From positions 186,001-250,000 of IMG/VR virus record IMGVR_UViG_3300031857_000005: a stretch of DNA of 64,000 nucleotides; one strand, written 5' to 3'. Under the pieces are notes generated by a model. The model was not told the origin of the DNA. It did not search any database and worked only from the letters and a program-made list of their open reading frames with translations. Positions 2,397 through 12,241 of the stretch are shown piece after piece. The translations under genes and the position numbers were made by a program. The first letter of the stretch is position 1. Every line of letters starts with the position of its first letter.

Positions 2397-3140
2397 ATGT
2401 TTGTAACTGTATGTAATAAAGAATATCTTATTGGTTTTGAGGTAATGTTAAAATCTCTTGTGGAGAATAACCCAAGAGTTATTGAGGAAGATATCCCATT
2501 CACAATTATTAGTAATGATTTAACATCAGATGATTTAATAGTTGCGAGAAAAATTCATAATAATATTTCATTAAAAACCTATGATTCATCAAAATATTAT
2601 GAAATTGATGAGTTAAAAAAACAACAGATGTCGTTTGGTGATTACGCCAAATATGAAATATTTTCTATTGAGGATGTTGATAAAATCATATTTCTTGATT
2701 CCGATACTTTAATATTAGGGAACATTGATAGATTAATTGACTCTGATTATAATTTTGGTGCTGTTAGAGAATTGTATATTGACCAATACAATACCGGAGT
2801 AATAGTCATTTCAAAGAAATATTTAAACCCTAAAATCACAAATGATTTAATCAATTTAACAAAAGTTTATGGAATAACTGAACATTCCGATCAGGATATT
2901 ATAAATCATTACTTTGAAGACGTTATTAAAGATTTCCCAATTGAATATAATTTTTTAAAAACATACAATAAAAAAGTATTCCAAAACACAGGGTTACCTA
3001 AGTACATCAAAATATTACACTACATAGTTAAAAAACCTTGGCAACAAAAAGAATTAGTGTCTTTAGAAGAAGGGACTTTATGGACTGAAAGATATTGGTT
3101 TGATTATTATTCAAAAATACTTAAACTAAAAAATGATTAA
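2397..3140 (+). CDS. glycosyltransferase family 8
   Basis: IIFLDSDTLI (DxD), YNTGVIVI, SDQDIIN, YNF, ILHYIVKKPW motifs. Confidence 0.85.
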   Translation: MFVTVCNKEYLIGFEVMLKSLVENNPRVIEEDIPFTIISNDLTSDDLIVARKIHNNISLKTYDSSKYYEIDELKKQQMSFGDYAKYEIFSIEDVDKIIFLDSDTLILGNIDRLIDSDYNFGAVRELYIDQYNTGVIVISKKYLNPKITNDLINLTKVYGITEHSDQDIINHYFEDVIKDFPIEYNFLKTYNKKVFQNTGLPKYIKILHYIVKKPWQQKELVSLEEGTLWTERYWFDYYSKILKLKND

Positions 3141-4041
3141 AAGACATTACGATAAAAGTGAGTTATTAAACTACGTTGAGTTAGATAAGGATACAACAAC
3201 ATTAGAGAATAAAGTAATATTATTACATTTAGATTCTTTTTGTTTGGGGGATACTATTTGTTTTGCGTCATTTATTGATTCATTTATAGATTACCACAAC
3301 CCAAAAAAAGTTATTGTATCCACATTTTTTCCTCATTTATTAATATCAAATAATGAAAAATGTGAAATTATTAACGCCAATCAACAAAAAAAATTAACAA
3401 TAGATAAATTAATTGATGTTGGTTATGATAAAAATAATATGTCACATACTTTGGGTGGTATGTTGTATGCAACCAAAGATACAATGATGATACCACAATC
3501 AACCGAACCAAAAAAACCAACATTAATACCAAAATTTAAAAACGTTAAATCAAATAAAATAACTATTGCTCCCGAATCATTAAAATCAATTGCTCAATGG
3601 GATAGAGATGGTTGGCAGTTAGTTGTTGATTCTTTGGTTAATTCTGGTTTTGAGGTTTTTAATGTCTCTTACGAAGATACATTAAAATTAAATAATGTTA
3701 AAGGATATCACGGATTTGATGATATCAACGTCTCGTTAAATCACATATTAGAATCAAGATTGTTTATTGGGCTATCTTCGGGATTATCTTGGTTGGCATG
3801 GGCGTATGATGTTCCAGTTGTTATGATTTCAGGTTTTACAAAAGAACACAATGAATTTGATTGTTTTAGAGTTATTAATAAAAACGTTTGTAATGGGTGT
3901 TTTAATTTATTTCCAAATATTAGCACTAAATGTCCGATATTTTTAAATACAGAAAGAGAAAACGAATGTCATAAAAAAATAACACCAAAAATGGTTATAG
4001 AACAAATAAACAAGGCAATTATGTTTACAAACAATAAATAA
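3133..4041 (+). CDS. autotransporter O-heptosyltransferase-like (TibC/Aah, GT-B) glycosyltransferase
   Basis: LGDTICF; FIGLSSGLSWLAWAYDVPVVMISGFT; four-Cys cluster CNGC-x10-C-x11-C resembling the TibC iron finger. Confidence 0.75.
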   Translation: MIKRHYDKSELLNYVELDKDTTTLENKVILLHLDSFCLGDTICFASFIDSFIDYHNPKKVIVSTFFPHLLISNNEKCEIINANQQKKLTIDKLIDVGYDKNNMSHTLGGMLYATKDTMMIPQSTEPKKPTLIPKFKNVKSNKITIAPESLKSIAQWDRDGWQLVVDSLVNSGFEVFNVSYEDTLKLNNVKGYHGFDDINVSLNHILESRLFIGLSSGLSWLAWAYDVPVVMISGFTKEHNEFDCFRVINKNVCNGCFNLFPNISTKCPIFLNTERENECHKKITPKMVIEQINKAIMFTNNK

Positions 4042-4058
4042 AATATTATTATAAATTT

Positions 4059-4946
4059 ATGGAAAAAAAATATTCAATATTTCATATAGAAGGTGGGTTA
4101 GGAAAACATATATGTGCAACTGCGGTTGCAAAATGTATTAAGAATAATTTCCCTGAAAGAGAGTTGATTGTGGTATGTGCTTACCCTGAAATATTTTTAA
4201 ATTTAGAATTTATTGATAGAGTGTATAGAATTGGTAACACACCATATTTCTACGATGACTTCATTAATGATAAAGATTCAAAAATATTTAAACATGAACC
4301 TTATTTCACTGATGAACACATACATAAAAAATTACCTCTAATTGAGAATTGGTGCAAACTGTTTAATTTGAATTATTTAGGAGAGAAACCTGAATTAGTA
4401 TTTAATCTTAGGCAAAAACAAACAGGTATTAACAAATGGAAAAGAGATAAACCTGTGATGGTAATCCAAACAAACGGAGGACCCTTAAATGATCAACCTT
4501 ATCCATATTCTTGGACTAGAGATATTCCGTATGATGTTGCTCAACATTTAGTTAATTATTTTTCACCACAATATCACATAATTCAAATATGTAGAAATGA
4601 AAAAAATGCAATTGCAGGATGTGAAGTTATTACAGAACAAATGTCTAACATGGAATTGTTTTCACTATTGTTTATGTCTGAAAAAAGAATTTTAATTGAT
4701 TCTTGTTTGCAACACGCATCTGCGGCAATGGGAATACCATCAACTGTTTTATGGATAGGTACATCGCCAGTTATGTTTGGTTATAACACACACAAAAATA
4801 TTATTGCAAAATTACCTAACACGGTGAAATTACCTGATAGTTATTTGTTTGATTATAATTTTAATGGGTTAACACATGAATGTCCTTTAATAGATACCGA
4901 TATTTTTGATATCGACGAAATAATATATAATATAAATAATTTTTAA
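4059..4946 (+). CDS. GT9-like (GT-B fold) glycosyltransferase
   Basis: N-terminal IEGGLGKHICAT; C-terminal LIDSCLQHASAAMGIPSTVLW matches the GT9 DSG..H.A.A.G.P motif. Confidence 0.7.
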   Translation: MEKKYSIFHIEGGLGKHICATAVAKCIKNNFPERELIVVCAYPEIFLNLEFIDRVYRIGNTPYFYDDFINDKDSKIFKHEPYFTDEHIHKKLPLIENWCKLFNLNYLGEKPELVFNLRQKQTGINKWKRDKPVMVIQTNGGPLNDQPYPYSWTRDIPYDVAQHLVNYFSPQYHIIQICRNEKNAIAGCEVITEQMSNMELFSLLFMSEKRILIDSCLQHASAAMGIPSTVLWIGTSPVMFGYNTHKNIIAKLPNTVKLPDSYLFDYNFNGLTHECPLIDTDIFDIDEIIYNINNF

Positions 4947-4947
4947 T

Positions 4948-5769
4948 ATGGTAGAAAAGATATTTTTTCAAAGCTCATTACCAAGAGCTGGTTCAACATT
5001 ATTACAAAACATAATGGGGCAAAATCCTGATTTTTATGTTACACCAACTTCAGGTGTTTTAGAACTTGTATATGCCGCAAGAAACAATTACACTAACTCG
5101 CCTGAATTTAAGGCTCAAGATTCTAAATTAATGAAAGATGGGTTCATATCATTTTGTAAAAATGGTATGGAGGGATTTTTTAATGGTGTAACAGATAAAC
5201 CTTATGTTTTAGATAAAAGTAGAGGGTGGGGAGTTCACTATGGTTTTTTAAATTCTTTTTATCCTGAACCTAAAATAATTTGTATGGTTAGAGATCCAAG
5301 ATCAATTTTTGCGTCAATGGAGAAAAATTTTAGGAAAAGTCAACATTTAGATTCAGGATTGGTTAATCATGCTCAAATGGCAGGAACAACGACTGAAAAG
5401 AGAATTGATATATGGGCTCAATCACAACCTGTTGGTTTGGCTTTAGAAAGATTACAACAAATTTTTAGAGAAGGGGTAAACGACAAAATATTGTTTGTTA
5501 GATTTGAGGATTTAACCTCAAGTCCTAAAACAGAAATAGAAAGAATTTATACCTATTTAGGATTACCGTATTATGAAGGTCATGACTTTAATAACGTAAC
5601 TCAAATTACAAAAGAAGATGATTCAATTTATGGTATTTACGGTGATCATGTCATTAAACAACGAATAGAACCTACCAAAAAAGATTATCGGGATATCTTA
5701 GGTGATGATGCTTCTAATTGGATAAAAAACAGATACAAATGGGTATTTAATCAATTTGGTTATTTTTAA
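4948..5769 (+). CDS. PAPS-dependent sulfotransferase
   Basis: 5'-PSB motif SSLPRAGSTLL; 3'-PB motif MVRDPRSIFAS; VRFEDL. Confidence 0.85.
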   Translation: MVEKIFFQSSLPRAGSTLLQNIMGQNPDFYVTPTSGVLELVYAARNNYTNSPEFKAQDSKLMKDGFISFCKNGMEGFFNGVTDKPYVLDKSRGWGVHYGFLNSFYPEPKIICMVRDPRSIFASMEKNFRKSQHLDSGLVNHAQMAGTTTEKRIDIWAQSQPVGLALERLQQIFREGVNDKILFVRFEDLTSSPKTEIERIYTYLGLPYYEGHDFNNVTQITKEDDSIYGIYGDHVIKQRIEPTKKDYRDILGDDASNWIKNRYKWVFNQFGYF

Positions 5770-5774
5770 TTATT

Positions 5775-6233
5775 ATGGAGAATAAAATTTATTGGTTTAC
5801 CGGTCAGCCAGGTGCGGGAAAGACAGTTTTGTCTTTAATGTTAAAAACGGTTTTAGAACTTGACAATAGTAATAAAGTATTTCATATTGATGGAGATGAA
5901 TTAAGAAGTCTTTTTAATAATCAAAAATACGGTAGAGAAGGTCGTGAAGAGAATATAAAACGAGCACAAGATATTGCTAAATTTATATTAGCTCAAGGAC
6001 ATAGTGTTGTTGTTAGTTTGGTTGCACCATACAAAGAACTTAGAGAAAGTCTTAAACAAGAGTTGGGTAATTTGCTTGTTGAGTTTTATGTTCACACTAC
6101 AGATATTAGAGGTAGAGAACATTTTCACACCGACGAATATGAAAAACCAACAGAAAATTATTTAGATATTAATACAACTAATGTTGACCCACAAATATCA
6201 CTAAACCAAATAATAGAACACATTTCAAAATGA
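5775..6233 (+). CDS. cysC: adenylyl-sulfate (APS) kinase
   Basis: WFTGQPGAGKT P-loop, IDGDELR, R.ENI.R, VSLVAPY, YEKP. Confidence 0.9.
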   Translation: MENKIYWFTGQPGAGKTVLSLMLKTVLELDNSNKVFHIDGDELRSLFNNQKYGREGREENIKRAQDIAKFILAQGHSVVVSLVAPYKELRESLKQELGNLLVEFYVHTTDIRGREHFHTDEYEKPTENYLDINTTNVDPQISLNQIIEHISK

Positions 6234-6694
6234 ATTGGGAAGTAAAAAATCACGGAGGAGAACCTACAACAAACGAAAGTAAAAAATATGCAATATTTGT
6301 TGGTAGATACCAACCATACCATTATGGACATATTGAGTTAATACAACAAAAATTAAATCAAGGAATTCCTGCTCTTATTATGGTTAGGGATATTGAACCT
6401 GACGAAAAAAATCCATTTACCACTGAACAAACGGTAAAGATGATTGAGGAATATCATAACTCAAAAGGTGATGATGTTAAAGTTGTTATTATTCCTGATA
6501 TTGAATCTGTTAATTACGGTAGAGGTGTTGGGTATGAAATAAATGAATTCACACCACCAGATAATATTGGATTCATATCTGCAACAGGAATAAGAAACTC
6601 AATTGCTAAAGGTGACGACAAATGGAAAGATATGGTGGACGAATCAATACAAGATTATATAATTAATTTTTTAACATATGCAAATACAAAGTAA
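6230..6694 (+). CDS. small HIGH-superfamily nucleotidyltransferase (NadM/Sat-like; candidate minimal ATP sulfurylase)
   Basis: GRYQPYHYGH (HxGH) and ISATGIR motifs; ATGA overlap with cysC. Confidence 0.7.
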   Translation: MNWEVKNHGGEPTTNESKKYAIFVGRYQPYHYGHIELIQQKLNQGIPALIMVRDIEPDEKNPFTTEQTVKMIEEYHNSKGDDVKVVIIPDIESVNYGRGVGYEINEFTPPDNIGFISATGIRNSIAKGDDKWKDMVDESIQDYIINFLTYANTK

Positions 6695-7118
6695 AACTTA
6701 TCAAATCAGATTTAACACAGATTCAAAAACTGATGATGAAAGATGGAGATTAATTGAAAACGGTAACGAGACATTAGTTTCAGACATCATTATTGATGGA
6801 CACACTCAAACAACTAAAGATTGGTTACCGGAAATTAATGATTATAAATGGCATGTTAGTTGTGTTGGTTATTGTAGTATTGAGAATAATGTTGCATATA
6901 TAAAAACCATAAAAGAAGAATCTGTATTAATTAGACATATTTTAAAAACAGTTAGTTATAGATTTTTAGGAACCTTAACTACAGTTGTTGTTGCATATTC
7001 GTTAGGGGCAACAATTGAGGTTTCGGCATTGCTTGGTGTTGGTGAACTTATTATGAAACCATTTATATATTTTGGTCACGAAAGATTGTGGTATAAATAT
7101 ATAAGAATTAAAAAATAA
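6678..7118 (+). CDS. N-terminal small beta domain fused to a DUF2061-like membrane domain
   Basis: C-terminus RHILKTVSYRFLGTLTTVVVAY...ELIMKPFIYFGHERLW matches DUF2061 as I recall it; two hydrophobic helices. Confidence 0.7.
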   Translation: MQIQSKTYQIRFNTDSKTDDERWRLIENGNETLVSDIIIDGHTQTTKDWLPEINDYKWHVSCVGYCSIENNVAYIKTIKEESVLIRHILKTVSYRFLGTLTTVVVAYSLGATIEVSALLGVGELIMKPFIYFGHERLWYKYIRIKK

Positions 7119-7146
7119 CTTTCTTTCATTGTATTTATAAGATACA

Positions 7147-7641
7147 ATGGAGCAATCAATTACTATACAAAGTATTAATTATGACGGTGAACTTGCTAAT
7201 ATCTTATTTAAACCAGATATTAGCGAAACCGTATATAATTTAGGTGATCAGTTTTTACCTTTTGTGTTTAATTCAAACACAATTAACCCTAATTTAGAAG
7301 TATTTGGGACATATACTATATTAATTTTATTTAATAAATGCCCATATTTTTTAAATGTCCCAAGACTTACTCCTACACCGACACCTACAAATACGCCAAC
7401 TAGAACACCAACACCTACACCAACACCTACGATTACACCTACACCTACGTTCGATCCTTGTAAGGTACCAACACCAACACCAACGGTTACTACAACGCCT
7501 ACGATTACACCTACAAATACACCAACTCCAAGTGTGACTTGTACAAATCCTTGTGGTTGTCCTGAACCAAGTAAAACACCAAAACCAAGTAAAACACCAA
7601 AACCGACACCTACTTGTACAAGTCCTTGTGGTTGCCCATAA
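7147..7641 (+). CDS. Pro-Thr repeat (mucin-like) virion-associated protein with Cys-rich C-terminus
   Basis: Long (PT)n tract; CTNPCGCP and CTSPCGCP motifs; TATTTATA motif upstream. Confidence 0.7.
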
Positions 7642-7694
7642 ACAATTTAATTTTTGATTAAATGTTTTATTGTATTTATATAATGTAATTTAAA

Positions 7695-9632
7695 ATGATA
7701 CATCAAATTTCAATAACAGGAGTAACAGGAACTCCACCATATTCAATATCGGTATGTGATTCAACATACACATATTGTTATTTGGTTACAGGTTCAACAA
7801 CAATACCACCAACATTTACTTTTGATGTTCCATCACCTTTAGATGGAGTTAATAATTTAATTGTAAAAATAACTGATTCTACAGGATGCGAATACTTTGA
7901 ACCTTATAGTTGTCCTCCTACACCGACACCAACACCTACTCTAACACCGACACCAACACCTACCCCAACCGATTTGTGTTATTGTTTAATGGCAGTTAAT
8001 TCATCCATGATGGATGGTTCGTTTGATTATATAGATTGTGATGGATTATCACAATTAAATATTCATGTCCCAAGTGGAATAACATATTATACTTGTGGAT
8101 CTAACCCGACAAACATAATTAATTTATCAATCGGAATAGGTGATTTATGTTCTTTATCCAGTTGTAATCCACCTTTACCTTCATTATCGGCAACACCAAC
8201 TCCTACTCCCACACCTTCGTCATTACCTTTTGCGTTTATTTCAGTTTGGTCGGCATCAACTACAATTGAACTTCCGTATTCACCAACTGGAACTTATTCA
8301 GGAATAATAGATTGGGGTGATGGTAATACATCTGTTAACTCATATGCAAATAGAACTCATACATATTCGATAACAGGTGATTATACTGTAACAATTACAG
8401 GTACAATTGAGGGTTGGGATTTTAATAATTATGCGACATCTTATAAAAACAATATAAAAGAAATATTAAGGTGGGGTCCACTAAAAGGAGAATCAGGTTC
8501 AAACAATGGCATGTTCTATGGTTGTCAAAATTTAATTATAACAGGTGTAACAGATACTATTAATTTAATTGGAATAACAAATTTGAGTAGTATGTTTTTT
8601 GGTTGTACTAGTTTAACTACCGTAAATAATATGGATAGTTGGGATGTATCATCTGTTAATAATATGTCGGGTATGTTTACATTGACATCTAATTTCAATC
8701 AACCAATAGGAAGTTGGGATGTTTCAAATGTTACAAATATGGCATCTATGTTCTCGTTATCCACAAACTTTAACCAAAACATCGGAAGTTGGGATGTTTC
8801 AAACGTTACCAATATGTTGGCTATGTTTTTAGCCGCGGCAAATTTCAATCAACCAATAGGAGGATGGGATGTTTCAAATGTTATCAATATGTCAGCTATG
8901 TTCGCAGGTTCTCAAAATTTCAATCAACCAGTAGGAAGTTGGGATGTTTCAAATGTTACCAATATGTCGTCTATGTTTGGTAATGCAACAAACTTCAATC
9001 AGACAATTGGGGGTTGGGATGTGTCAAATGTTACCAATATGGGTAATATGTTTGGTAATGCAACAAACTTTAACCAAAACATCGGAAGTTGGGATGTTTC
9101 AAATGTTACCGATATGAATGGTATGTTTTTATCGGCAATAAACTTTAACCAAAACATCGGAAGTTGGGATGTTTCAAATGTTACCGTTATGAATGGTATG
9201 TTTAATAATGCTACAAGTTTTAACAATGGAGGTTCTCCAAGTATAAATTTATGGAATGTTTCAGGTGTGACAAATATGTCATTTACTTTTTATACCGCAA
9301 CAAATTTCAATCAACCAATAGGAGGATGGGACGTATCTAATGTAACAAATATGGAAAATATGTTATCATTGGCAACAGTTTTTGATCAACCAATCGGAGG
9401 ATGGGATGTTTCATCAGTAACTAATATGAGTTTTATGTTAAATGGTACGTCATTATCAACACCTAATTATGATTTACTACTCAATGGATGGGCATCATTA
9501 GGAGGTTCATTACAACCCTCAGTTAATTTTAATGCCGGTACTTCTGTATATACGATTGCAACGGCTGGTGTGAGTAGAAATTATTTGACAGGAACCAAGT
9601 TATGGAATATAACTGACGGGGGAGGAATTTAA
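7695..9632 (+). CDS. virion decoration/adhesin: PT linkers, PKD-like domain and BspA/DUF285 26-aa surface repeats
   Basis: (PT)n tracts; IDWGDG..HTYS..G.YTVTITG PKD-like motif; repeats FNQ[PN]IGxWDVSNVTNMxxMF. Confidence 0.85.
   Translation: MIHQISITGVTGTPPYSISVCDSTYTYCYLVTGSTTIPPTFTFDVPSPLDGVNNLIVKITDSTGCEYFEPYSCPPTPTPTPTLTPTPTPTPTDLCYCLMAVNSSMMDGSFDYIDCDGLSQLNIHVPSGITYYTCGSNPTNIINLSIGIGDLCSLSSCNPPLPSLSATPTPTPTPSSLPFAFISVWSASTTIELPYSPTGTYSGIIDWGDGNTSVNSYANRTHTYSITGDYTVTITGTIEGWDFNNYATSYKNNIKEILRWGPLKGESGSNNGMFYGCQNLIITGVTDTINLIGITNLSSMFFGCTSLTTVNNMDSWDVSSVNNMSGMFTLTSNFNQPIGSWDVSNVTNMASMFSLSTNFNQNIGSWDVSNVTNMLAMFLAAANFNQPIGGWDVSNVINMSAMFAGSQNFNQPVGSWDVSNVTNMSSMFGNATNFNQTIGGWDVSNVTNMGNMFGNATNFNQNIGSWDVSNVTDMNGMFLSAINFNQNIGSWDVSNVTVMNGMFNNATSFNNGGSPSINLWNVSGVTNMSFTFYTATNFNQPIGGWDVSNVTNMENMLSLATVFDQPIGGWDVSSVTNMSFMLNGTSLSTPNYDLLLNGWASLGGSLQPSVNFNAGTSVYTIATAGVSRNYLTGTKLWNITDGGGI
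8590..9440 (+). repeat. tandem 78-bp (26-aa) DUF285 repeats, about 11 units
   Basis: Near-identical units, e.g. aaactttaaccaaaacatcggaagttgggatgtttcaaa near 8765, 9065 and 9141. Confidence 0.85.
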
Positions 9633-9679
9633 AAACATTTATTGAGTTTTATTTTTATTTTTTTATTATTAAAATAAAA

Positions 9680-10927
9680 ATGAAAATTTTCATCCAAATC
9701 GCTTCTTATAGAGATCCCCAACTTATACCAACAATTAAAGATTGTATTGATAAATCAAAAAAACCTGAAAATTTAAGATTTGGTATTTGTAGACAATTTC
9801 ATCCTGAAGATGGTTTTGATAATTTAACAGAATATGAGAATGATGATAGATTCAGAATTTTAAATATTCCATATCAAGAATCAACAGGCGTGTGTTGGGC
9901 AAGAAACCAAGTACAACAATTATATAAAGGAGAAAAATACACTCTACAGTTAGATTCTCATATGAGATTTGAACAAGATTGGGATGATACTTTAATTAAA
10001 ATGATTAAAGGATTACAAAAGAATGGCTATAAAAAACCATTATTAACTGGTTATGTCTCATCATTTGATCCTGAAAATGATCCTCAAGGTAGGGTTACCG
10101 ATCCGTGGAGAATGACATTTGATAGATTTACACCTGAAGGTGTTGTATTCTTTTTACCTGAAGTAATTCCTAATTGGAGGGAATTTAGTGAACCAATACC
10201 TTCAAGATTTTACTCCGCACATTTTGCATTTACATTAGGGGAGTTTTCTAAAGAAGTTCAACATGATCCTGAATACTATTTTCACGGTGAAGAAATTTCA
10301 ATTGCAGTAAGAGCATACACTCATGGATATGATTTATTTCATCCACATAGAGTTGTTATTTGGCACGAATACACAAGGAAGGGTAGAACTAAACAATGGG
10401 ACGATGATAAAGAGTGGTATAAAAAAAACGAATCTTGTCATAAAAAGAATAGACAAATACTTGGTATTGATGGAGAATCTTATGAAGGGGATTTAGGTAA
10501 ATATGGTTTTGGTACCGAAAGGACAATTAGAGATTATGAAAAATATTCAGGTATCCTATTTTCTAAAAGAGCAATACAACAATATACAATAGATAAAAAT
10601 TATCCTCCTAATTCATACGATTATGAAACTGAAGAACAATGGTTAGATAGTTTTACAACAATATTCAAACATTGTATTGATATATCATTTGATGGAGTTC
10701 CTGAAAATGATTACGATTTTTGGGTTGTTGCATTTCATAATGAAAAAGATGAAACTTTATTTAGACAAGATGCCGACTCAAACGAAATAAATAGAATGAT
10801 GCAAGATCCTGACAGATACTGTAAAATATGGAGAGAATTCCACACAAAAGAAAAACCTAAGTATTGGGTTGTGTGGCCGTATAGTAAATCAAAAGGATGG
10901 TGTCCAAGATTAACAGGTAATTTATAA
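9680..10927 (+). CDS. GT60 / GlcNAc-transferase family protein (Skp1-hydroxyproline/polypeptide alpha-GlcNAc transferase-like)
   Basis: IFIQIASYRDP, G.CWAR, LQLDSHMRF (DSH), FHGEE, AYTHGYD, WHEY motifs. Confidence 0.8.
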   Translation: MKIFIQIASYRDPQLIPTIKDCIDKSKKPENLRFGICRQFHPEDGFDNLTEYENDDRFRILNIPYQESTGVCWARNQVQQLYKGEKYTLQLDSHMRFEQDWDDTLIKMIKGLQKNGYKKPLLTGYVSSFDPENDPQGRVTDPWRMTFDRFTPEGVVFFLPEVIPNWREFSEPIPSRFYSAHFAFTLGEFSKEVQHDPEYYFHGEEISIAVRAYTHGYDLFHPHRVVIWHEYTRKGRTKQWDDDKEWYKKNESCHKKNRQILGIDGESYEGDLGKYGFGTERTIRDYEKYSGILFSKRAIQQYTIDKNYPPNSYDYETEEQWLDSFTTIFKHCIDISFDGVPENDYDFWVVAFHNEKDETLFRQDADSNEINRMMQDPDRYCKIWREFHTKEKPKYWVVWPYSKSKGWCPRLTGNL

Positions 10928-10932
10928 TTTAT

Positions 10933-11643
10933 ATGGTAACATTTAATGATGTAAAAATAGCTGATGTTGGGTATTATATAAATTTGGATAGTAGGGTTGA
11001 CAGAAAAGATAACCTTGAGTCACAGTTTAATAAATTTAACATAAAGGGGGTTAATAGATTTTCGGCATTTTCAAGTTACCCAAGTAATCCCTCAAATTGT
11101 AAAAAAAGTCATTATCAATTATTTGAATTGTTTTTACAATCAAATTACAATACTATGTTAGTATTAGAAGATGATTGTAAGTTTTTAGATTTTTTAAAGG
11201 ATGAGTCAACCGAAATTTTTGATAAAATTTTAAATACTGATTGGGATTTATTTTGGTTAGGATGTAGAAATAGAAAACCACCAAAAAATTATATTAATAA
11301 TTGTTATTTTACCTCATCAACTTCCGGAGCTCAATCTTACATTATAACAAAAAGATTTGTTGAGTATCTATTATCTACTTTCCCTATTGAACCTAACGAT
11401 AATTTAAGGAACACATCAATTGATGAACTACTGTGTTTATCAATATATGATATTGATGTGGTTAATAACCCAAATAAATATAATTTTTATAATTTAGATC
11501 AACCTTTAGATAATCTACAAACTAAATTTAAATCATTGTGTTATGAAAAGGCACTTACAACACAATATCTTTCATATAGTGATTTATGGGGTACTACTAC
11601 CGATTTAGAATATTATATGATATCATCACACCCAAAACAATAA
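10933..11643 (+). CDS. glycosyltransferase family 25
   Basis: YYINLDSRVDRK, CKKSH, LVLEDD, AQSYII motifs. Confidence 0.8.
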   Translation: MVTFNDVKIADVGYYINLDSRVDRKDNLESQFNKFNIKGVNRFSAFSSYPSNPSNCKKSHYQLFELFLQSNYNTMLVLEDDCKFLDFLKDESTEIFDKILNTDWDLFWLGCRNRKPPKNYINNCYFTSSTSGAQSYIITKRFVEYLLSTFPIEPNDNLRNTSIDELLCLSIYDIDVVNNPNKYNFYNLDQPLDNLQTKFKSLCYEKALTTQYLSYSDLWGTTTDLEYYMISSHPKQ

Positions 11644-11647
11644 TAAT

Positions 11648-12241
11648 ATGAACGGACACTTTATTTACAAAAATTTAATTATTAGTCAACATCCAAATGT
11701 TGGGGAAAAGTTTAAAACACTTATTGACGAATACAAACCATCAAGAGTTTTAGAAATAGGAACTGCGGATGGCGGATTAACATTATTAATAAGAGATTTA
11801 TTAGATAGTGTGGGATTAACTAATACAATAGTACGAACTTATGATGTTAATGAACAAAAAAATTTAAAGTTAAAAGAAAGAAATATTGAGATAATCACAA
11901 AAGATGTTTTTAATTATCCATATTCAGATTTAGAATATCCTGATGAAATCAGAGACTTTATACAAAGTAATGGTAAAACTTTAGTTCTTTGCGATGGAGG
12001 GAGTAAAAAAAATGAATTTAGATTATTATCTCAATTTTTAAAATATGGTGATATTATTATGGCTCACGATTATGCACCAAATGAAAATTATTTTAATGAA
12101 AATATAAAAGATAAAATATGGAATTGGTTAGAAATACAAGATTTTGATATTAATGAAAGTTGTTTAACTTATAATCTTAAACCATATATGGAAGATGAAT
12201 TTCGTTCTGTTGTATGGGTATGTAAAATAAAAGAACAATGA
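11648..12241 (+). CDS. class I SAM-dependent methyltransferase (CmcI/sugar O-methyltransferase-like)
   Basis: VLEIGTADGG motif I; LVLCDGG; IIMAHD. Confidence 0.75.
   Translation: MNGHFIYKNLIISQHPNVGEKFKTLIDEYKPSRVLEIGTADGGLTLLIRDLLDSVGLTNTIVRTYDVNEQKNLKLKERNIEIITKDVFNYPYSDLEYPDEIRDFIQSNGKTLVLCDGGSKKNEFRLLSQFLKYGDIIMAHDYAPNENYFNENIKDKIWNWLEIQDFDINESCLTYNLKPYMEDEFRSVVWVCKIKEQ

Follow-up and report, generated by a model that had tools for sequence, protein, structure and literature searches.

A candidate minimal ATP sulfurylase encoded beside an APS kinase in a jumbo phage

Sulfate activation is thought to be carried out by only two enzyme types, the homo-oligomeric ATP sulfurylase Sat (PF01747), which includes Sat-CysC fusions such as PAPS synthase, and the heterodimeric CysD/CysN, in which CysD has an unrelated fold (a PP-loop ATPase) and CysN is a GTPase that drives the reaction. 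Sat is an enzyme of about 390 aa with a PUA-like N-terminal domain and a QxRN motif, and it is genetically coupled or fused to APS kinase in both domain orders. The same superfamily fold is also found in two adenylyltransferases relevant here, the NadM-type (archaeal) NMN adenylyltransferase and PPAT (CoaD), whose substrate is phosphopantetheine.

Here, we analyzed a window of 64,000 nucleotides (IMG/VR record IMGVR_UViG_3300031857_000005) from a tailed jumbo phage of about 300 kb and about 31% G+C, which carries a compact operon including a sulfotransferase (ST), an APS kinase (KIN), a 154-aa HIGH-signature nucleotidyltransferase (NT) and a DUF2061 membrane protein. We propose that NT, a member of an unannotated family, may be a third kind of ATP sulfurylase, a reading that rests on comparative genomics, in the absence of biochemical data for any member of the family, and that we hold with moderate confidence. 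Literature searches found nothing on this family, on DUF2061 in sulfur metabolism, or on phage PAPS modules.

Gene content of the phage locus

The genes between 2397 and 7118 are tightly packed (Table 1). The unknown ORF upstream of ST ends 1 nt before it, the ST stop and the KIN start are separated by 5 nt, KIN and NT overlap as ATGA, and NT and the DUF2061 gene overlap by 17 nt. These positions confirm those of an earlier note on the sequence, which had described the four genes from ST to DUF2061 as translationally coupled or nearly so and had inferred that the small ORF is a stripped-down ATP sulfurylase.

Table 1. Features of the locus, with positions in the 64,000-nt window
Position	Strand	Feature	Length	Supporting matches
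2397..4041	+	Upstream genes of the same operon: GT8 glycosyltransferase (2397-3140) and a TibC/Aah-like O-heptosyltransferase (3133-4041)		PF01501 1.9e-21; TIGR04414 2.5e-35, below its cut-off
4059..4946	+	Unknown protein, possibly a GT9-like glycosyltransferase	295 aa	No Pfam hit
4948..5769	+	Sulfotransferase (ST), the PAPS consumer of the module	273 aa	PF13469 3.1e-23; PF00685 5.3e-13; weak NoeE-like match; phrog_27463 9e-40
5775..6233	+	Short-lid APS kinase (KIN)	152 aa	PF01583 5.4e-19, 69.2 bits (cut-off 21.1); TIGR00455 67 bits (cut-off 138.7)
6230..6694	+	Nucleotidyltransferase (NT), candidate ATP sulfurylase	154 aa	PF01467 1e-7, 32.7 bits (cut-off 21); TIGR00125 34.3 bits (cut-off 27.7)
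6305..6331	+	RYQPYHYGH, HxGH ATP-binding signature in its NadM-type form	residues 26-34 of NT	
6383..6391	+	VRD, family signature	residues 52-54 of NT	
6515..6535	+	YGRGVGY, family signature loop	residues 96-102 of NT	
6575..6595	+	ISATGIR, SxTxxR motif of the superfamily	residues 116-122 of NT	
6678..7118	+	DUF2061 protein: unknown N-terminal domain plus C-terminal two-helix membrane hairpin, likely membrane tether of the module	146 aa	PF09834 1.2e-12 at residues 88-138
7147..7641	+	Pro/Thr-rich protein, speculative candidate acceptor of glycosylation and sulfation	164 aa	

The kinase keeps the P-loop, DGD, R44, the REEN..R motif and the S-x-x-A-P motif, which align with canonical CysC sequences, but lacks a lid segment of about 16 aa (KGLYK...FTG) and falls below the NCBIfam equivalog cut-offs. 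Related phages have a full-length CysC of 190-207 aa in the same position.

Profile searches found no PF01747 in the window's 118.6-kb record or in five related phage records. Neither PF01747 nor PF01507 (CysD/CysH) was found in a 304-kb record judged complete that carries an identical copy of the module, nor in two other near-complete relatives, the three genomes being at least 95% complete.

Sequence and predicted fold of the nucleotidyltransferase

NT belongs to the HIGH-signature nucleotidyltransferase superfamily, but it is not a stripped-down Sat by descent, a correction to the earlier note. The family profile finds NadM NMN adenylyltransferases at 2e-17 (1f9a) and no Sat chain in the PDB at E up to 10. 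NT, which is modelled as a single Rossmann-like domain, reaches a fold Z of 14.5 to NadM (1f9a) and 13.0 to PPAT, against 10.0 or less to Sat, the Thermus Sat catalytic domain (1v47) aligning at Z 10.0 over 130 residues. For PPAT there is no sequence-level membership (E no better than 1.7e-5 with the family profile). NT lacks the PUA-like domain of Sat and the Q and N of its QxRN motif, and the family members are about 130-155 aa long. One relative (P0129) has a sub-threshold hit to the last 40 positions of the Sat profile at 1.6e-4.

In an alignment of 31 diverse family members, G25, R26, H31 and H34 are invariant, R53 is near-invariant, G97, R98 and V100 are near-invariant, G101 and Y102 are invariant, S117 and R122 are invariant, and T119 is near-invariant. 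The parallels to Sat motifs drawn in the earlier note are either superfamily-wide (HxGH, and SxTxxR, which aligns with SGTEIR of NadM and LSGTKVR of Sat) or only weakly supported: hhalign against six Sat sequences aligns YGRGVG with the NYG...GRDHAGVG stretch at E 0.0052 and a probability of 6.9%.

With NadM, NT shares the motifs GR(F/Y/W)QP(F/Y)HxGH, NPFT and SxTxIR...G..W..lV; the fold and the GRFQPFHxGH signature show shared ancestry and not shared substrate. Comparison with eight archaeal NadM-type proteins shows that VRD replaces the GSAQ motif and that two segments of about 17 and about 8 residues, including the Trp-bearing helix, are deleted, the GRxVGY loop standing where NadM carries about 25 further residues. 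NadM residues 77-108 of 1f9a have no counterpart in NT; this segment, between the DIE strand and the GYEV strand, probably takes part in NMN binding. We regard NT as a NadM/PPAT-like adenylyltransferase whose large-substrate pocket was cut away.

Linkage, fusions and phyletic distribution

Four kinds of genomic evidence point to sulfate adenylylation:

(i) Among the 150 best 50%-identity cluster representatives, 36 are KIN-NT and 11 are NT-KIN fusions, with full-length kinase domains that score 126-231 bits on PF01583. Two more representatives are NT-DUF2061; fusions of this kind include P0068, P0167 and P0251.

(ii) In 80 related viral loci the kinase is fused (10) or adjacent (64) to NT despite shuffled gene orders, DUF2061 lies within 1.5 kb of NT in 66, and a sulfotransferase lies within 6 kb in 27. 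The linkage is not chance. The order GT8-heptosyltransferase-unknown 295-aa protein-ST-KIN-NT-DUF2061 is conserved in 17 of these loci (L007, L008, L016-L019, L022, L023, L026, L030, L031, L038, L039 and L041 in full). NT with KIN, or their fusion, also occurs in Omnitrophota (with sulfotransferases on the same contig), Planctomycetota, Peribacteria and SAR11.

(iii) In all 120 genomes available for one GTDB phylum, of which 112 have CysH, NT is present in 78, Sat in 18 and a CysD-type second PAPS_reduct gene in 14, and no genome has two of the three. This exclusion is clade-structured, may reflect as few as two displacement events, and would be shown by any clade-specific gene. Widening the sample from class to phylum returned the same 120 genomes, and in Omnitrophota only 4 of 151 genomes carry NT, so that this second sample was uninformative.

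(iv) The complete 1.56-Mb chromosome of one genome of this phylum (G010) has a PiT-type permease with CysH, CysC at 231 bits, sulfite reductase and NadD, but no Sat and no CysD. Its NT is 66% identical to the phage NT and is the only gene that plausibly fills the sulfurylase step. The NT-carrying contigs of the phylum are titled Thermodesulfobacteriota or Candidatus Dadabacteria.

Other parts of the distribution fit less well. In an Acidobacteriota MAG the NT-CysC fusion lies next to cysD and cysN, so NT is at best redundant there, and one Omnitrophota genome may also have CysD. In the NT-bearing phylum NT is not clustered with cysH or cysC. NT occurs in 56 of 101 sampled SAR11 genomes, where APS could come from AprAB, and a sulfotransferase-like ORF follows NT in only 1 of 47 loci scanned, most of them SAR11.

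DUF2061 is absent from the NT-bearing genomes of the phylum and is found there only as DUF2061-CysC fusions in four Sat-bearing genomes; it is therefore linked to APS kinase and membrane-side sulfation and is not needed for NT.

Proposed function and alternatives

In the model we favor, NT adenylylates sulfate (ATP + sulfate gives APS + PPi), and the adjacent kinase immediately phosphorylates APS to PAPS, pulling the very unfavourable first step forward. The sulfotransferase would then use PAPS to sulfate a glycan or glycoprotein made by the neighbouring glycosyltransferases, while the DUF2061 hairpin would hold the PAPS-making enzymes at the membrane. That the second substrate of NT is sulfate, that the proteins associate with each other and the membrane, and what the acceptor is remain inferences; a complex prediction for the window's kinase and NT gave no verdict (score 0.00), which is neither support for nor evidence against binding. 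The phage could also rely on host APS and need only the kinase. The central inference of the earlier note, that NT supplies the sulfurylase step of a self-contained PAPS module, is supported, with the further correction that 'sulfotransfer rather than assimilation' holds for the phage, whereas in the bacterial phylum the same family appears to serve assimilation.

It is somewhat more likely than not that the family as a whole is a third, so far unrecognised and independently recruited family of ATP sulfurylase for a known reaction, a one-domain enzyme of 125-155 aa usually coupled or fused to APS kinase. If so, it would be the sulfate-activating enzyme of a lineage of jumbo phages, of a whole bacterial phylum, of several candidate phyla, and possibly of more than half of SAR11 species, where it might run in reverse, after AprAB, to make ATP from APS. 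This would be a clear case of non-orthologous displacement and would show that large phages carry a self-sufficient PAPS supply, apparently to sulfate glycans or glycoproteins during infection. It could also change how sulfur metabolism is read in abundant, streamlined bacteria, as automated reconstructions score these genomes as unable to activate sulfate because the gene is only named 'cytidyltransferase-like'. A tiny sulfurylase naturally matched to a kinase could help in enzymatic PAPS regeneration.

An alternative that we consider unlikely is that NT is a partner of APS kinase but not the sulfurylase, for example a protein that binds or channels APS/PAPS, regulates the kinase, or adenylylates another small anion or the acceptor, with APS coming from the host. 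The Acidobacteriota locus shows that NT can coexist with a canonical sulfurylase, most hosts make APS, and catalytically idle partners may have a precedent in the kinase-like regulatory domain of fungal Sat. However, the conservation of the catalytic HxGH and SxTxxR residues argues for an active enzyme, and this alternative does not explain the exclusion with Sat and CysD or the sulfurylase-less genomes that keep CysC, CysH and sulfite reductase.

Still less likely is that NT is an NMN/NaMN adenylyltransferase for phage NAD+ salvage, its position beside the kinase being incidental or NadR-like (kinase plus NMN adenylyltransferase). This is the alternative closest by homology (PRK01153 at 5.7e-14; PDB 2qjt and 1f9a), phages often carry NadM-Nudix genes, and Salvovirus kinase-NT fusions lie next to a COG3236/NADAR-like gene. 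Nevertheless, NT scores far below the equivalog cut-offs (48.4 bits against 181 for TIGR01527, 52.1 against 127 for PRK01153), the probable NMN-binding elements are lost, the fusion partner is APS kinase and not a ribosylnicotinamide kinase, NadD scores above its cut-off in NT-bearing genomes, and the anti-correlation with Sat and CysD has no explanation under NAD metabolism.

Activation of a sugar phosphate or polyol phosphate for the neighbouring glycosyltransferases, in the manner of HldC (heptose-1-P adenylyltransferase) or TagD, is improbable even though the operon holds a TibC-like heptosyltransferase, and cytidylyltransferase and HldC folds are detectable at Z 5.5-7.3, because the conserved partner is the kinase and DUF2061, many loci have KIN-NT without glycosyltransferases, NT stands alone among housekeeping genes in the bacterial phylum, and HldC and TagD rank well below NadM, PPAT and Sat by fold.

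Among the flanking genes, the unknown 295-aa protein is found beside the sulfotransferase in many related loci, on either strand; its Atlas neighbours carry Glyco_transf_9, which is a lead only, and it shows no pairwise similarity to the neighbouring heptosyltransferase. The Pro/Thr-rich protein directly downstream is conserved in position but varies in length (102-333 aa) in relatives.

Genomic setting and gene content

The window, which corresponds to bases 265-64264 of a 118.6-kb IMG/VR virus record, has about 31% G+C and encodes a tail sheath, baseplate wedge, DnaB-type helicase, UvsX-like recombinase, ribonucleotide reductase and a family-B-like DNA polymerase; it is therefore a large tailed phage. 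An identical copy of the module lies in a 304-kb record that CheckV rates complete, and relatives reach 385 kb in IMG/VR and 411 kb in an ENA assembly.

The four ORFs, a sulfotransferase, an APS-kinase-like protein, a HIGH nucleotidyltransferase (NT) and a protein ending in a DUF2061 hairpin, are where the earlier note placed them. In that order, they are separated by 5 nt, an ATGA overlap and a 17-nt overlap. The same packing continues upstream through an unknown 295-aa ORF, a TibC/Aah-like heptosyltransferase and a GT8 enzyme, so that the four genes belong to a longer unit.

Coordinates of the features discussed in the text, in the window and in related loci
Sequence	Coordinates	Feature	Length (aa)
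Window	2397-7118	Packed gene unit, GT8 enzyme to DUF2061 protein	
Window	2397-12241	Glycosylation cluster surrounding the PAPS genes	
Window	4948-5769	Sulfotransferase	
Window	5775-6233	APS-kinase-like protein	152
Window	6230-6694	HIGH nucleotidyltransferase (NT)	154
Window	6678-7118	Protein ending in a DUF2061 hairpin	
Window	7129-7139; 7670-7680	TTGTATTTATA, possible promoter element	
Window	7147-7641	Pro/Thr-rich protein	164
Window	7695-9632	DUF285/PARCEL repeat protein	
Window	9680-10927	Skp1-type GlcNAc transferase (PF11397)	
Window	10933-11643	GT25-like ORF	
Window	32650; 50991; 55173	One-mismatch copies of the possible promoter element	
L005 (Xylella phage Bacata)	4142-5318	Region with the short P-loop kinase-NT fusion	
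L006 (Stenotrophomonas phage DLP_6)	4590-5321	Short P-loop kinase-NT fusion	
L095	7995-8453	Chromosomal NT of the phylum that contains G010	
L114 (Pelagibacteraceae)	4778-10541	Short kinase and NT pair with organosulfur and one-carbon genes	
L130 (Pelagibacteraceae)	5395-10322	Short kinase and NT pair with organosulfur and one-carbon genes	
L185 (bacterial genome G021)	1916-2644	DUF2061-APS kinase fusion	242
L186 (bacterial genome G021)	1693-2454	DUF2061-APS kinase fusion	253

Descent of the kinase and the nucleotidyltransferase

The kinase keeps the P-loop, DGD, R44, the REEN..R motif and the S-x-x-A-P motif of CysC but lacks about 16 residues of the lid, whereas sister phages carry an ordinary 190-207-aa CysC in the same slot. 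We read the window's form as a short-lid APS kinase.

The only curated families that the NT hits are generic (PF01467, TIGR00125), and the best specific models are NadM NMNATs, which it matches far below their cut-offs. The nearest solved structures by sequence are likewise NadM-type NMNATs, found at 2e-6 with the single sequence and at 2e-17 with a 31-member family profile, with no Sat appearing at E up to 10. A confident predicted model (pLDDT 91) matches NadM at Z 14.5 and PPAT at Z 13.0, followed by NadD enzymes at Z 10-11, Thermus Sat at Z 10.0 and other Sats at Z 6-8. A profile-profile comparison with six Sat sequences is weak (E 0.005, with a low match probability of 7%), although it does line up HxGH with HRAH, the GRGVG loop with NYG...GRDHAGVG, and ISAT.IR with LSGT.VR. 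The motif parallels to Sat drawn in the earlier note, which inferred a stripped-down ATP sulfurylase, are thus not wrong, but they are mostly superfamily features, and the protein is a NadM/PPAT-like enzyme, not a truncated Sat.

Using an alignment with eight archaeal NadM-type proteins, together with the profile alignment to 1f9a, we identified three differences that set the NT family apart from NadM. The family has VRD where NadM has GSAQ, it lacks two segments, about 25 residues in all, between the DIE strand and the GYEV strand, and it carries an almost invariant GRxVGY loop there instead. The deleted part likely includes the Trp-bearing helix that covers the nicotinamide in NadM. The catalytic G25, R26, H31, H34, S117 and R122 are invariant, while R53 and R98 are new near-invariant basic residues, which is what one would expect if the second substrate had become a small anion.

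Evidence bearing on the function of the NT

Three lines of evidence point to sulfate adenylylation as the function of the NT: (i) The family is large, with 2,907 hits in the 90% clusters and 1,234 representatives at 50% identity, and it is repeatedly fused to the kinase. Among the best 150 representatives, 36 are kinase-NT and 11 are NT-kinase, with full-length kinase domains that score 126-231 bits on PF01583, and two more are NT-DUF2061. Fusion in both orders implies independent events and a shared pathway. In P0139 and its cluster (248-249 aa), an NT domain is fused to DUF6717, a family of unknown function.

(ii) In 80 viral loci, the kinase is fused (10) or adjacent (64) to the NT, and three of the five loci with no kinase at all are cut by a contig end. 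DUF2061 lies within 1.5 kb in 66 loci, before, between or after the pair, and a sulfotransferase lies within 6 kb in 27. These loci are relatives (48-100% identity) and are not independent, but the varying gene order still shows that the linkage is maintained. In cellular genomes, the pair or its fusion occurs in Omnitrophota (with sulfotransferases on the same contig), Planctomycetota, Peribacteria and a Moranbacteria MAG, an Acidobacteriota MAG, and many Pelagibacteraceae.

(iii) A standalone NT that is 66% identical to the phage protein, including its N-terminal W..KNHG extension, is a single-copy gene in a bacterial phylum whose records are titled Thermodesulfobacteriota or Candidatus Dadabacteria; this similarity suggests fairly recent gene transfer between that lineage, or a shared donor, and the phages. 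In a search of 120 genomes of this phylum, CysH was found in 112, the NT in 78, Sat in 18 (each next to cysH) and a second, CysD-sized PAPS_reduct gene in 14. No genome has any two of NT, Sat and CysD, and 10, likely incomplete MAGs, have none of the three. The three states look clade-structured, so the number of independent displacement events may be as low as two, and in this phylum the NT lies among housekeeping genes, not with cys genes. A complete 1.56-Mb chromosome of the phylum, G010, has a PiT-family permease directly upstream of cysH (apparently as in the Bacillus cysH-cysP arrangement), a 231-bit CysC, a sulfite reductase and a NadD above its cut-off, but no Sat and no CysD. The one missing step is sulfate adenylylation, and the NT is the one gene with the right chemistry and the right associations elsewhere.

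On this indirect evidence, we consider it more likely than not that the NT is an ATP sulfurylase. The reaction is known, whereas the enzyme family and its minimal architecture would be new: databases call the protein 'cytidyltransferase-like', and our literature searches found nothing on it. The alternative that survives best, though we regard it as unlikely, is that the NT is a partner of the kinase with a role other than that of a sulfurylase. In an Acidobacteriota MAG, the NT-CysC fusion sits divergently next to cysD and cysN, with sulfotransferase-glycosyltransferase fusions downstream, and one Omnitrophota genome also has a CysD-sized gene, so that the NT can coexist with a canonical sulfurylase. 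Redundant sulfurylases are probably common in bacteria, but this co-occurrence keeps the alternative alive, and the phage could simply use host APS. We hold an NMNAT to be improbable and a sugar-phosphate nucleotidyltransferase slightly more so, with some room left for other possibilities.

Related branches, DUF2061 and possible acceptors

In SAR11, the NT is found in 56 of 101 sampled Pelagibacteraceae genomes, paired or fused with a truncated kinase of about 135 aa, and four such genomes lack Sat and real CysD or CysH. A sulfotransferase-like ORF seen downstream is not conserved. The usual neighbours are a GcvT/DmdA-like gene, an enoyl-CoA hydratase and, in one locus, SBP56; across the Pelagibacteraceae loci L114 and L130, the pair lies next to a GcvT/DmdA-like gene, an MTHFR-like gene, an enoyl-CoA hydratase and SBP56-type methanethiol oxidase. 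SAR11 has AprAB, and the NT could therefore run in reverse there (APS + PPi to ATP + sulfate), which is still sulfurylase chemistry; the gene neighbourhood is compatible with the NT acting after AprAB in sulfite oxidation.

The same short-kinase-NT fusion occurs in Alphaproteobacteria and in Salvovirus and Stenotrophomonas phages, where it is annotated 'kinase' or 'adenylylsulfate kinase'. Four of five such alphaproteobacterial genomes lack any PAPS_reduct gene, and we treat this branch as less certain. The cultured Xylella phage Bacata and Stenotrophomonas phage DLP_6 carry a 243-246-aa fusion of a short P-loop kinase with an NT that keeps the GRxVGY signature (phrog_10255); in Bacata, the fusion follows a COG3236/NADAR-like gene, and no sulfotransferase is annotated nearby.

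DUF2061 is not needed for the NT, since it is absent from the NT-bearing genomes of the phylum that contains G010. It does occur in bacteria at the N-terminus of a bona fide APS kinase, as in the two DUF2061-CysC fusions L185 and L186, one of which lies beside a second CysC, an ABC-2 exporter, a UDP-glucose dehydrogenase and an epimerase, and it also occurs as NT-DUF2061 fusions. We infer that the simplest reading is a membrane tether that places PAPS synthesis next to envelope or secreted-glycan sulfation.

The glycosylation cluster that surrounds the PAPS genes holds the GT8 enzyme, the TibC/Aah-like protein O-heptosyltransferase, a possible GT9-like ORF, the Skp1-type GlcNAc transferase, the GT25-like ORF and the DUF285/PARCEL repeat protein, which suggests phage-encoded protein or glycan decoration that is then sulfated. 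The Pro/Thr-rich protein directly downstream of the DUF2061 gene has a long Pro/Thr-rich tract and two C-x-x-P-C-G-C-P motifs, is conserved in position but varies from 102 to 333 aa in related phages, and is a possible mucin-like acceptor. A glycosylated, sulfated mucin-like phage protein or a modified host envelope glycan are both possible.

The element TTGTATTTATA, counting its one-mismatch copies, lies 8-31 nt upstream of five + strand start codons (7147, 7695, 32675, 51013 and 55214) and may be a phage promoter element, although its overall count (17 with up to one mismatch) is not significant against shuffles, which gave 10.6 +/- 3.3. Finally, contigs binned as Bacteroidota (L088-L090, from Flavobacteriales/Bacteroidota MAGs and a single-cell genome) carry a full-length CysC plus an NT 74-77% identical to the phage NT; they may be phage contigs in the bins or infected cells, which hints at a Bacteroidota host for this low-GC phage group.
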